Origin: Bispira polyomma
Lineage: Eukaryota
Length of the DNA stretch: 64,000 bases
Assembly: GCA_965649765.1 (NCBI GenBank)
Contig: OZ287752.1
Coordinates: 18,848,001-18,912,000, forward strand
Direction of reading: 5' to 3'
A program made the position numbers and the translations under genes. The notes under the pieces are model-generated. The model was not told the DNA's origin, made no database searches, and was given only the letters and a program-made list of their open reading frames with translations. Shown in pieces: positions 45,401-62,327 of this stretch. How positions within the stretch are numbered: position 1 is the first letter of the stretch; every line of letters starts with the position of its first letter.

Positions 45401-45596
45401 TCATGGCCTGATGTTTGCATATGATTTCTCCTCTAGCTGGTCTGGTATCTTTGCCACATTCTCATATGTAGATATGTCTGCTGTTGCTACAGCTCTTTTA
45501 GTAGGTTTATCCATTGTGTTAAGTTGGTGTAGCAGTGAACTGAAGCTGGGTCTCTGATCAGGGTTATATTCCCAGCATGTTGTCATCAGCTCATAT
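45401..45596 (-). CDS. Copy A last exon: kinase subdomain XI + tail (STYENV, SYANI)
   Basis: [18 protein letters not shown] tyrosine-kinase signature. Confidence 0.92.
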
Positions 45597-60500: not shown

Positions 60501-62327
60501 CTCATTACCTTTCTGACTAGTGAACTCAGCCTCTAGCTCACGCACACCGGCATCAACCTGTTTTTGTAGCTCATTAGCACTTCTTAACGCTGCTAGTTTA
60601 GGGACAATTTCCTCATCCGAGGATAACTCGGACGAGTCTTCTACTGTGGACACCACACGTTTTTTACTTTTAGTCTTATACTTTGCTTTACTTAACTTGT
60701 TTTTGTCCTTCTTTGATGTCTCTCCCGCCGCCACCTTGTCCTCCACCACTTCCAGTCTTTTGTTGACCTTTCTCAACTGCTGTAGAATCTGGTGCTGAAT
60801 GTCTTCATCTGATGAGGCTGGTTCTGTCGAGGAAGCTCTCCTGGCCTCTGCTGTTCTCTTGTTCACCCCACGTGTCACTCTTCCCTGTTGCTCGTCTGGC
60901 TGCTGCTCCTCCATCCTAGCGGTACAATTCTTTCCCGTCGGGGGATAATGCTTCTTCTGACACTTTTTACAGTTAACTTTATTTTTACTAGGCATATTTG
61001 TTCGCCTTTATTTTTTGCTCAATAGTTCAGTATCTGTAGATAGAAATATAACCACACCACCAGTACGCTTTTCGATGCAAATCCACGCTTGATAGCCAAT
61101 TTGAACTAAAAACCCTACCAAATAATAATAGGTTAGACCATCCCTTTTTAGTGGCTTTTACAAGCCCAATCAAGCATGAGGTTGTCGAAGAGCGTGTTTG
61201 GTAGATGTGTAGCAGTAACCCAGTGTTGTAGTAATCACACACAAAATTGTAAATGTCTTTTTAAAATAAACTAAAATATGTATAAGTTAAAAGTTCCTTC
61301 ACATAAAAACACAGAAATTTCCACACATTTAAATCACAACTGACTCCTTCAATAAGTCAGTTTGAACTGACTTGTTTACCCTTATTCTTTCAGCCGGGGC
61401 CAGTCTTGGCCAATTAGGTTAGTCGTATACTTGTTACCTTAGTGATGGGGGGGGGGGGGGGTCGGAATGCAACCCATACCATAATACACTAATTAGCCTG
61501 GTATCTTAAAATTTAGAGTTGGGTTGGAGGCCTGACCCCCGTGATGCCTTAACACCATAGACGAAAATGAGGCAAAAGTTCAGTAGAGTAAAATATTATA
61601 GCACAAAACGTATTCTAAAAAATTTGTAAGTCTAGACGCAATAGTTTTCCCTTGAATAAGAATGAGGTTAAAGTTCGATTTTGAGAACATTCATATACAT
61701 CCAAACTGTTAACCAAATTTAGTAAAGATATCTGTAACAGCTTGTCTGCAAACGATAAAAAATAACTTCAATGGAGTTGTCACAGAGGCCATCTTGTTAT
61801 CCAAAATTATGCCAAAATTCAGTGGGAGCACGATATTTTAGCAGTAAACCTGTCCTGAATATTTGGTGAGGCATGATGCAATAGTTTTACTCTGTCAGTG
61901 TTACCAAAAAAAACTCTTGCGTGGTGGCAGCGGCATAACCGCATGTAAACCAGAGTATCCACGGGATGGATACAATTAACATGAGCAGATATGCTGAATA
62001 ACATTAAATGCAACTTACCTCGTTCACTTAGGTTCAGTTTTACCACCACTTCATCTCCTACACCATTATTCAGTACAACTTGATACAGACCAAAGTCCTC
62101 AGCTATTACAGGGTCAAAGGTCAGTTCTATCAGAGTCTCATCCACTTTATCCCCTGCTGCTTCCACCTGTATACTGTTAGCAGGTATTTTAGAACCTTCA
62201 AACATGACGTCCACATGATCAGTAGTGACTGCCGGATAGGCCCTCACTGTACAGTTTAGTAAAGCCTTTTTATTTTCTTCTATGTATGTGATCTTCTGTA
62301 GGGGTGAACTCACATCAACTGGGGAAA
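45401..62327 (-). CDS. Copy A: nephrin-like Ig/FN3 receptor tyrosine pseudokinase, last 12 exons (5' exons beyond window)
   Basis: Exons 62019-62327, 53917-54192, 53325-53585, 49206-49330, 48861-49043, 48518-48683, 48277-48384, 47656-47828, 46934-47062, 46679-46793, 46443-46539, 45401-45596 total 2138 nt and join in phase with no stop before TGA at 45401-45403. Confidence 0.9.
45988..46193. repeat. Intronic tandem duplication, 2 x ~103 bp
   Basis: CCCTTAGACTGAATCTCTGAACAAC...CTACAACTAAATTCCATAGTAA occurs twice. Confidence 0.85.
46443..46539 (-). CDS. Copy A kinase exon (subdomain X)
   Basis: [30 protein letters not shown]; AG/GT sites. Confidence 0.92.
46627..46666. repeat. (TA)20 microsatellite
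   Basis: Perfect TA run 12 nt from a splice donor. Confidence 0.95.
46679..46793 (-). CDS. Copy A kinase exon (subdomains VIII-IX)
   Basis: [11 protein letters not shown]...[18 protein letters not shown]. Confidence 0.93.
46934..47062 (-). CDS. Copy A degenerate catalytic-loop/DFG exon
   Basis: [13 protein letters not shown] (for IHRDLAARNVLV) and CRLTGFG (for KIxDFG). Confidence 0.9.
47656..47828 (-). CDS. Copy A kinase exon (subdomains V-VIa)
   Basis: [16 protein letters not shown]...LQGLAYLE. Confidence 0.92.
48277..48384 (-). CDS. Copy A kinase exon (alphaC, subdomain IV)
   Basis: [22 protein letters not shown]; phase 1-1. Confidence 0.9.
48518..48683 (-). CDS. Copy A kinase exon (VIYEDI, degenerate Gly loop, beta3 Lys)
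   Basis: [13 protein letters not shown]...SVMVK; AG/GT sites. Confidence 0.88.
48861..49043 (-). CDS. Copy A juxtamembrane exon with YMNV, YEDL, YQDL; GC donor
   Basis: 183-bp open phase 0-0 exon ending GAG|GCAAGT. Confidence 0.75.
49206..49330 (-). CDS. Copy A transmembrane exon
   Basis: [25 protein letters not shown] followed by KKRRNRK stop-transfer. Confidence 0.92.
49412..50022 (+). mobile_element. Tigger/pogo transposase, C-terminal part (inverted segment)
   Basis: IGIFKKRY...[21 protein letters not shown], acidic stretch, KIQKDIRLF end. Confidence 0.85.
50381..50820. repeat. ~3.1 x 139-bp tandem array (HINE/MITE-type internal repeats)
   Basis: TAGTTGTGCAAC at 50482, 50621, 50760; TGACCTT motifs. 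Confidence 0.9.
51090..51358. repeat. ~2 x 142-bp tandem repeat remnant
   Basis: TATCTC.GA.ACGGTGCTAG..AGAGC.ATTTCGAGC at ~51121 and ~51262. Confidence 0.7.
51401..51832 (-). mobile_element. Tigger/pogo transposase DDE domain, N-terminal part
   Basis: [35 protein letters not shown]...[13 protein letters not shown]...[19 protein letters not shown]. Confidence 0.9.
52575..53140 (+). repeat. Degenerate HINE-like tandem units
   Basis: Repeated GCC(A/G)T(C/T)TTGTTTTT..AATG(AGGC) at ~52586, 52730, 52888, 53030. Confidence 0.65.
53325..53585 (-). CDS. Copy A membrane-proximal divergent FN3-like exon
   Basis: [21 protein letters not shown]...QYRLDFY; 261 bp, phase 1-1. Confidence 0.82.
53917..54192 (-). 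CDS. Copy A FN3 exon (not in ORF track)
   Basis: [38 protein letters not shown]...[21 protein letters not shown]; nephrin-type GxNGG..QTF motif; 276 bp, phase 1-1. Confidence 0.92.
54332..55021. mobile_element. MITE (non-autonomous DNA transposon)
   Basis: TIRs TTGTGGTTCCA / TGGAACCACAA; CpG-rich interior with repeated AGTTCGATC and CCCGAC motifs. Confidence 0.75.
55441..55932. repeat. Ngaro repeat B2
   Basis: Near-identical to 56336-56827. Confidence 0.95.
56096..56335. repeat. Ngaro repeat A2
   Basis: Near-identical to 61326-61564; contains a poly(G) run. Confidence 0.95.
56336..56827. repeat. Ngaro repeat B1
   Basis: Abuts A2 to form the B/A circular-junction sequence. Confidence 0.95.
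56866..57400 (-). pseudogene. Ngaro tyrosine recombinase catalytic domain (N-terminal part deleted)
   Basis: [32 protein letters not shown] (R-HxxR-Y). Confidence 0.92.
57372..57992 (-). CDS. Ngaro RNase H domain
   Basis: [30 protein letters not shown]. Confidence 0.9.
   Translation of the reverse strand: MLELLRCSQHGGKIHLPSDFFRDLRRFAKFLPLYNGISIYDHKNGDFILELDACLVGLGGRWKDMVYHLAICRGYKNLDIVHLEMINILLALRLLYKYWAGKKVLIKCDNDAVVKVLQSGRARDPFLGACARNVWYLAALADVDLQYVHVMGKLNRAADLLSRWQNTIENNRELLMYVERPLWLNVAVDMLELDNEHFFDSLESRI
58068..58934 (-). pseudogene. Ngaro reverse transcriptase (YxDD partly deleted, frameshifted before RNase H)
   Basis: [43 protein letters not shown]. Confidence 0.92.
59885..60995 (-). 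pseudogene. Ngaro gag (frameshift near 60200-60225) with C-terminal Cys/His finger
   Basis: CKKCQKKH N-terminus, [13 protein letters not shown], then [18 protein letters not shown] in ORF 59885-60214. Confidence 0.85.
61326..61564. repeat. Ngaro repeat A1 (5' terminus)
   Basis: Near-identical to 56096-56335. Confidence 0.95.
61565..61976 (+). mobile_element. HINE-like element 3' part
   Basis: AAATGAGGC units and GTATCCA..TGGATACAATT palindrome; homologous to 17062-17236. Confidence 0.7.
62019..62327 (-). CDS. Copy A membrane-proximal Ig exon
   Basis: [11 protein letters not shown]...[16 protein letters not shown]; 309 bp, phase 1-1, G|GTAAGT donor. Confidence 0.92.

Follow-up and report, generated by a model that had tools for sequence, protein, structure and literature searches.

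What kind of receptor ends in a tyrosine kinase (TK) fold stripped of its catalytic residues, and whether such a gene still serves its bearer, is the question raised by a 64,000-nucleotide stretch of the Bispira polyomma genome (NCBI GenBank assembly GCA_965649765.1, contig OZ287752.1, positions 18,848,001 to 18,912,000). This stretch, called the window, corresponds to G000:C5:18848001-18912000 of a 1.035-Gb genome, and exon positions are window positions unless C5 is given. Erythrocruorin linker exons in this genome pass the Pfam cut-off, a hint that it belongs to an annelid. The gene under study, copy A, joins immunoglobulin (Ig) and FN3 domains to a transmembrane (TM) segment and a kinase domain that is dead by its motifs. 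As a whole, the reading that copy A is functional and belongs to an old family of receptor tyrosine pseudokinases that cross the membrane once, with a role in scaffolding and recognition, is considered reasonably probable from its sequence. To our knowledge, nearly all receptor tyrosine pseudokinases described so far come from eight human genes and the corresponding genes of flies, most of them single-copy and developmental. Recognition clusters of the kind proposed below have to date been better known in plants, as receptor-like (pseudo)kinase clusters, than among animal receptor tyrosine kinases (RTKs).

A kinase domain dead by its motifs in an intact reading frame

Copy A lies on the minus strand, where 12 exons (62327 to 45401), all with AG/GT ends, form one open frame of 700 codons and a stop, in agreement with the splicing predicted in an earlier sequence-only reading of the window. 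In transcript order, these exons encode a membrane-proximal Ig/I-set domain, Ig8 (62019..62327, Pfam); an FN3 domain, FN3a (53917..54192, Pfam fn3 E 1.8e-12); a divergent seven-strand sandwich, FN3b (53325..53585, fold model); a TM-like stretch with a basic stop-transfer sequence (49206..49330); and an acidic juxtamembrane segment with the Tyr motifs YMNV, YEDL, and YQDL (48897..49043). The kinase domain begins in K6, which holds a YEDI motif, a degenerate Gly loop, and the beta3 Lys (48518..48683), and continues through K7 with alphaC, where Gln replaces Glu (48277..48384); K8 with the hinge and alphaD-alphaE (47656..47828); K9 with a catalytic loop devoid of Asp and Asn, GFG for DFG, and an acidic activation loop (46934..47062); K10 with the P+1 loop, APE, and alphaF (46679..46793); and K11 with alphaG, ending at a phase-2 intron in alphaH (46443..46539). 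The last exon (45401..45596) carries alphaH/alphaI, a C-terminal tail with YENV and YANI, and the stop. Alternative ends exist for the juxtamembrane exon, and those chosen are conserved in copy C (L030), a complete paralog with seven Ig domains located 140 kb from copy A (G000:C5:18751792-18778450).

Database searches of copy A were run one exon at a time, the joined protein being handled in local scripts alone; exon by exon, this gave Pfam matches to Ig and fn3, then a TM-like stretch, with three of the kinase exons matching PK_Tyr_Ser-Thr. The kinase fold and its motifs were verified as first described, with SKGRYS as the Gly loop, HLQLSAEH for HRDLAARN, and GFG for DFG. Only the beta3 Lys remains of the catalytic set, the Gly loop, HRD Asp, catalytic Asn, and DFG Asp having been lost as claimed, and the Gln said to stand for the alphaC Glu does align to the alphaC Glu of FLT3. 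The APE motif and the alphaF Asp are retained. Copy A thus combines a TK fold, a TM helix, and an ectodomain, as expected of a receptor tyrosine pseudokinase. A pseudokinase lacks at least one of the beta3 Lys, HRD Asp, and DFG Asp, and both aspartates are absent in every aligned row, which supports the earlier prediction that copy A is one.

The receptor model beyond the window

Past the window end, copy A continues with seven further open phase-1 Ig exons (C5:18915274-18958921), namely a V-type tip (C5:18958541-18958921) and six C2/I-type Ig exons that run from it down to C5:18915274. The complete model is composed of eight Ig domains, FN3, FN3-like, TM, juxtamembrane, pseudokinase, and tail, and comprises 1,426 aa without the signal peptide, about 1,000 of them in the ectodomain. 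All 19 model exons are open over the 1,426 codons, and the lesions that might have lain in exons outside the window were not found in the seven Ig exons there. The sequence-only reading had borrowed the ectodomain of a neighboring gene, copy B, and arrived at about nine Ig and two FN3 domains; the exons of copy A itself give eight Ig domains, and its N-terminal Ig domains differ from those of both B and C. Copy B was therefore rejected as the ectodomain template for copy A, being a pseudogene with differing N-terminal Ig domains.

The claim of two FN3 domains held for the first, which Pfam recognizes. The second was missed by Pfam, and a model built from seven aligned homologs is a seven-strand sandwich (pLDDT, the predicted local distance difference test score, 93) with weak fold matches headed by FN3 domains; given these weak matches and the lack of a Pfam call, FN3b is labeled FN3-like. 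The best Protein Data Bank (PDB) match of the fourth Ig domain, Ig4, is SYG-2, so the earlier term "nephrin-like" is fair for the layout of the ectodomain, while the V tip has no significant match in the PDB.

Conservation of the family in other samples

A profile of K9, a 43-residue exon, was searched against 1.84 billion representative sequences and gave 20 matches, mostly exon-sized open reading frames (ORFs) on unannotated contigs; the others were two low-complexity matches and two proteins whose kinase domains are ordinary, one of them a named coral RTK. As far as this profile can detect, annotated proteomes appear to have no member of the family, although distant full-length members could fall just below its threshold. 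The homolog search at the protein level, with a length window short of full-length receptors, gave exon-level ORFs only, and matches in the ESM Atlas were generic kinase clusters only.

Homolog contigs came from seven samples (ERZ22147071, ERZ25070786, ERZ27264458, SRR29645036, SRR28267349, JGI 3300034978, and GCA_013332715.1). On long contigs from three samples (L031, L035, L037, L039, and L041), the order is a run of Ig domains, FN3, FN3-like, TM, Tyr-rich juxtamembrane, and pseudokinase. The seven kinase exons have identical boundaries and phases (0-1-1-0-0-1-2) in all homologs modeled, and K9 is 129 nt long in every one of them. None of the 10 aligned K9 rows retains the HRD Asp, the catalytic Asn, or the DFG Asp; nine have His in place of the catalytic Asn, and Gly replaces the DFG Asp (a G[FY]G-type motif). 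The beta3 Lys is invariant across the aligned homologs and the Gly loop is variable, and the alphaC Glu is retained in two homologs, L038 and L039. Distant homologs likewise have a YxN motif early in the juxtamembrane segment and a Tyr motif immediately preceding the kinase, and the first juxtamembrane motif of copy A is also present in L031 and L035.

Kinase identity to copy A falls from 49% in L031 to 31% in L032 and 29% in L037, compared with 26-30% for active kinases; the most distant members are no closer to copy A than active kinases are, which argues for an old family. In a tree, the family forms one clade (100/99), although this was tested against six active domains only and the branches are long, so the tree gives no placement among RTK families. 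A paralog from the same genome as copy A, L011, clusters with L031 and L035 and away from copy A, from which it follows that the expansion began before that split. The profile search additionally matched P0008, a 2,911-aa protein with about 10 tandem TK domains, several of them degenerate, and the Montipora receptors P0015 and P0024, each with two tandem kinase domains.

Paralogs, selection, and mosaic structure in the genome

The K9 exon has 26-27 strong matches in the genome, 20 of them within C5 16.4-27.5 Mb, so that there are about 27 pseudokinase paralogs. Both the HRD and DFG aspartates are lost in 12 of 12 genomic K9 copies read. The earlier claim that the dead state predates the duplication of copies A and B was right but understated, as this state was seen in all family members read, including those at 29% identity. 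The size of the family, its kinase-less paralogs, and its mosaic structure had escaped that reading. The view of copy A as a decaying active kinase was rejected because the dead state is family-wide. The kinase exons are under purifying selection. On K8-K11, the ratio of nonsynonymous to synonymous substitution rates (dN/dS) is 0.23-0.55 for older paralog pairs, including 0.41 for copy A versus L007 (p 0.0016) and 0.23 for L006 versus L007 (p 5e-7). An origin of the copies by assembly duplication was rejected since the closest copies differ (V 86%, Ig8 97-98%).

Ig8-like exons number at least 69 in the genome, versus 27 K9 exons, and for only 10 of these Ig8 matches does a K9 follow downstream, no more than 30 kb away and ahead of the next such match (the counts being lower bounds), which suggests that many relatives are kinase-less. 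Copies A and C diverge along a gradient, with amino acid identities of 20% in V, 31% in Ig2, 65% in Ig4, 78% in Ig7, 84% in Ig8, and 89-100% in the kinase exons. Synonymous divergence (dS) between them is 0.30 in five ectodomain exons versus 0.04 in the kinase (p 2e-12). Over the 2.9 kb that span K9-K12, introns included, the two copies are 95.7% identical. The V exon of copy A, for its part, shows 73-80% identity with V exons in the C5 interval 17.08-17.50 Mb, where no K9 or K10 exon was found in genome searches whose tables are lower bounds. The genes at 17 Mb share 70-84% identity with copy A in Ig8 and 29% at best in FN3b, and the juxtamembrane exon is not shared. Taken together, the gradient and the 17-Mb V matches indicate that a given tip occurs with more than one tail, and a given tail with more than one tip. 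Similar ectodomains are thus found on different cytoplasmic modules within one cluster, as in paired receptors, the absence of kinase exons resting on lower-bound searches.

Ancestry and relation to known receptors

When the family profiles were compared with the PDB, the top matches were FLT3/FGFR for K7, FGFR3 for K8, and the Src family for K9, and K10 matched FGFR, ranked after a two-domain EGFR construct; these are short exons with small margins. The K11/K12 boundary is phase 2 in alphaH in copy A and all homologs modeled, an intron that marks long-insert RTKs (PMC8662651) and whose group also takes in STYK1 (PMC4898815). The family thus resembles the FGFR/RET/VEGFR/PDGFR/Tie RTKs in the top PDB matches of three of four exon profiles and in the phase-2 alphaH intron, but differs in a different ectodomain and a kinase domain that is, by its motifs, catalytically dead. 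On this sequence evidence it is tentatively placed in or near the FGFR/RET/PDGFR/Tie branch, at the level of the branch and not of a sister family.

Among single-pass receptors with a dead TK fold, PTK7/Otk, ROR, RYK, HER3, EphA10, EphB6, and STYK1 are like the family. STYK1, PTK7, ROR, and RYK keep the catalytic Asp (PMC13259870, motif table). PTK7/Otk has an Ig-only ectodomain, a retained catalytic Asp, and ALG for DFG, and membership of this family was rejected since copy A has FN3 domains and has lost that Asp. EphA10 has His for Asn and GFG for DFG, as here, but has lost the beta3 Lys and kept the alphaC Glu (PMC13259870, Table 2); the shared motifs are read as convergence. EphA10 and EphB6 possess an ephrin-binding domain and a SAM domain and lack the beta3 Lys, whereas the present family has an Ig ectodomain, a retained Lys, and a tail too short for SAM, and membership was rejected on these grounds. 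No known receptor tyrosine pseudokinase combines V- and C2-type Ig domains with FN3 and FN3-like domains, nor is any known to form a large birth-and-death cluster that also holds kinase-less twins.

The nephrin/SYG-2/Sns/Hibris receptors resemble the family in layout, with a V-type tip, a run of C2-type Ig domains, FN3, TM, and Tyr motifs, which in those receptors are phosphorylated by other kinases, but the family has in addition an FN3-like domain, a whole pseudokinase domain, a variable Ig number, and many copies. Nephrin membership was rejected because the tail carries a pseudokinase domain, while the nephrin/SYG-2 tail has no enzyme domain. The Alr genes of Hydractinia are similar as clustered Ig-superfamily genes with a V-set tip, an FN3-like membrane-proximal fold, tails with immunoreceptor tyrosine-based inhibitory or activation motifs (ITIM/ITAM), and many pseudogenes (PMC9546547), and the vertebrate paired receptors (SIRP, LILR, and Siglec) are similar in having like ectodomains on different tails. 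No kinase-fold tail is described in either system, and the likeness is one of layout, not shown homology. No description of the architecture or of lophotrochozoan receptor pseudokinases was found in the literature searched, largely openly readable papers, and no match to a described receptor emerged, in keeping with the earlier remark that the architecture was not recognized. Receptor pseudokinases are a known class, within which this architecture and family are apparently undescribed.

Proposed function and alternatives

Copy A has seven cytoplasmic Tyr residues beyond the kinase core, in the juxtamembrane region and the tail. Six of them lie in Yxx[ILV] motifs (p 5e-5 in a shuffle test); three motifs fit the ITIM consensus (p 0.0009), and three are YxN (p 0.01). 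By analogy with nephrin, ITIM receptors, and the HER3/Eph pseudokinases, from which the steps are drawn, the V tip would bind a cell-surface ligand and cluster the receptor, and a separate kinase, most likely of the Src family as for nephrin and ITIM receptors, would phosphorylate the six Yxx[ILV] motifs that flank the dead domain. The phosphorylated motifs would recruit SH2 proteins, Grb2-type at the three YxN sites and SHP2-type at the three ITIM-consensus sites, while the pseudokinase would act as a docking or dimerization module that may bind ATP, given the retained beta3 Lys, but not Mg2+. Recombination in the cluster would let one tail carry various tips and one tip sit on various tails, a pattern suggestive of a rapidly evolving role in recognition (immunity or self/non-self).

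A scaffold receptor that signals through phosphotyrosine motifs is, on these analogies, very probable. An immune or self-recognition role, suggested by kinase-less twins and variable tips in a cluster with birth-and-death turnover, features that resemble Hydractinia Alr and paired receptors, is a serious possibility that falls somewhat short of even. More speculative, and on balance unlikely, is an invertebrate paired-receptor system in which one arm works via a pseudokinase and V tips are exchanged with kinase-less Tyr-tailed receptors, giving annelids a germline repertoire for self/non-self or pathogens.

Several points weigh against the functional and recognition reading. Values of dN/dS near 0.4 denote moderate constraint, and on the branch of copy A itself the ratio is 0.5-0.8 and not significant, the closest copies being too young. 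Neighbors B and C both carry lesions. The signal-peptide exon of copy A was looked for and not found, the V exon is joined to the gene by inference across a 15-kb intron, and a truncated Ig exon (L016, ~C5:18942700-18942921) lies between Ig2 and Ig3, in the second intron, with an acceptor and no convincing donor; the frame is kept if it is skipped. The 17-Mb genes are putatively kinase-less, as judged from exon matches. Identity gradients can also arise by gene conversion among tandem copies, with no immune role involved, and in a tandem array such conversion could by itself yield part of the mosaic pattern.

The receptor might instead act in development, as an adhesion molecule or co-receptor of the nephrin/SYG-2/Sns or PTK7/Otk kind, at cell contacts (filtration slits, synapses, or fusion) or in allosteric control of an active RTK, with the expansion put down to neutral drift of a cluster rich in repeats. 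Counting against this role is that receptors in development tend to be single-copy with a conserved binding end, as do tips down to 20% identical over near-identical kinases, tips common to kinase-less genes, and frequent pseudogene formation; it is held to be unlikely, if the strongest of the alternatives, as the SYG-2 match of Ig4 favors it, the deep conservation of the dead domain would suit a conserved partner, and vertebrate receptor pseudokinases act mostly in development (PMC13259870). That copy A is a young, silent duplicate with a frame intact by chance, while other paralogs work, agrees with the existence of very recent copies (L004, dS 0 on kinase exons), the missing signal exon, the large transposon insertions in introns, and the lesions of B and C, but is improbable with 19 exons open over the whole coding length, among them Ig exons that differ from the nearest counterparts in the locality by dS 0.2-0.6 and have dN/dS 0.45.

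Another proposal concerns descent, namely that the family is the protostome counterpart of STYK1/NOK and keeps a long ectodomain lost in vertebrates; NOK/EXTK expansions in amphioxus were reportedly described by D'Aniello in 2008. The shared intron group makes it worth raising, but STYK1 keeps the catalytic Asp and Asn with GLG for DFG (PMC13259870, Table 2), whereas all members here lack both and have a G[FY]G-type motif. STYK1/NOK has a very short ectodomain against about 1,000 aa in copy A, no STYK1-length protein occurs among the K9-profile matches, and the alphaC Glu is kept in L038 and L039, leaving the proposal rather unlikely. Highly improbable is an active kinase, or other nucleotide-using enzyme, with relocated catalytic residues: the invariant beta3 Lys and, both nearly invariant, the His at the catalytic Asn position and a Glu-His pair would fit it, but the catalytic base has been lost along with the two metal-binding residues, no conserved replacement Asp is present, and the Gly loop is variable.

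If copy A is indeed a functional recognition scaffold, the significance of the family would lie in a dead state retained while the kinase diverged to ~30% identity, within a new architecture and an expanded cluster that shuffles tips. Its members are a natural series for asking why a dead RTK domain is kept, and they offer concrete candidates, open to testing, for the receptors by which annelids recognize pathogens and reject grafts.

Neighboring copies and transposable elements

The number of Ig domains varies among neighbors, with eight in A, nine in B, and seven in C. Copy B (11553..36786, minus strand) is a pseudogene with nine Ig exons, three of them broken: the V exon is broken, stops occur in two Ig exons, and the five exons from FN3a to K6 are deleted. 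Its kinase has stops in K7 and K8 and has lost 21 nt from the catalytic-loop exon K9. Copy C has a stop six codons ahead of the normal end that removes the last YxN motif and is either a lesion or a tail variant. A V-set exon (5157..5630, minus strand, Pfam V-set) probably forms the tip of D, the kinase-less paralog that comes next. The local paralogs D (L025) and E (L019, G000:C5:18975300-18978500) have no kinase; in both, the TM exon is followed by short tails with three Tyr motifs. Paralog E has Ig3- and Ig4-type domains ~70% like those of copy A, and frameshifts. Some paralogs have two or three tandem Tyr-rich juxtamembrane exons (G000:C2:91103934-91104872 and C5:70.65-70.70 Mb), which would multiply docking motifs.

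The intron of copy A between Ig8 and FN3a holds an Ngaro/DIRS-type tyrosine-recombinase retrotransposon (55441..61567, minus strand) that is not part of the receptor. It encodes gag-like, reverse transcriptase, RNase H, and recombinase segments in nearly open frames, is inserted in sense, and has split direct repeats of 495 bp at 97% and 244 bp at 94%. A second, degraded DIRS-like element lies within copy B (19800-23900), and others occur at ~+142 kb and -57 kb relative to the start of the window, as well as next to the homologs on L031 and L041; such elements are frequent in the receptor clusters. The FN3b-TM intron of copy A contains remnants of a Pogo/Tigger-type transposase (Pfam DDE_1, 49400-51850) and, by eye, about four tandem copies of a ~97-bp unit (50380-50800).

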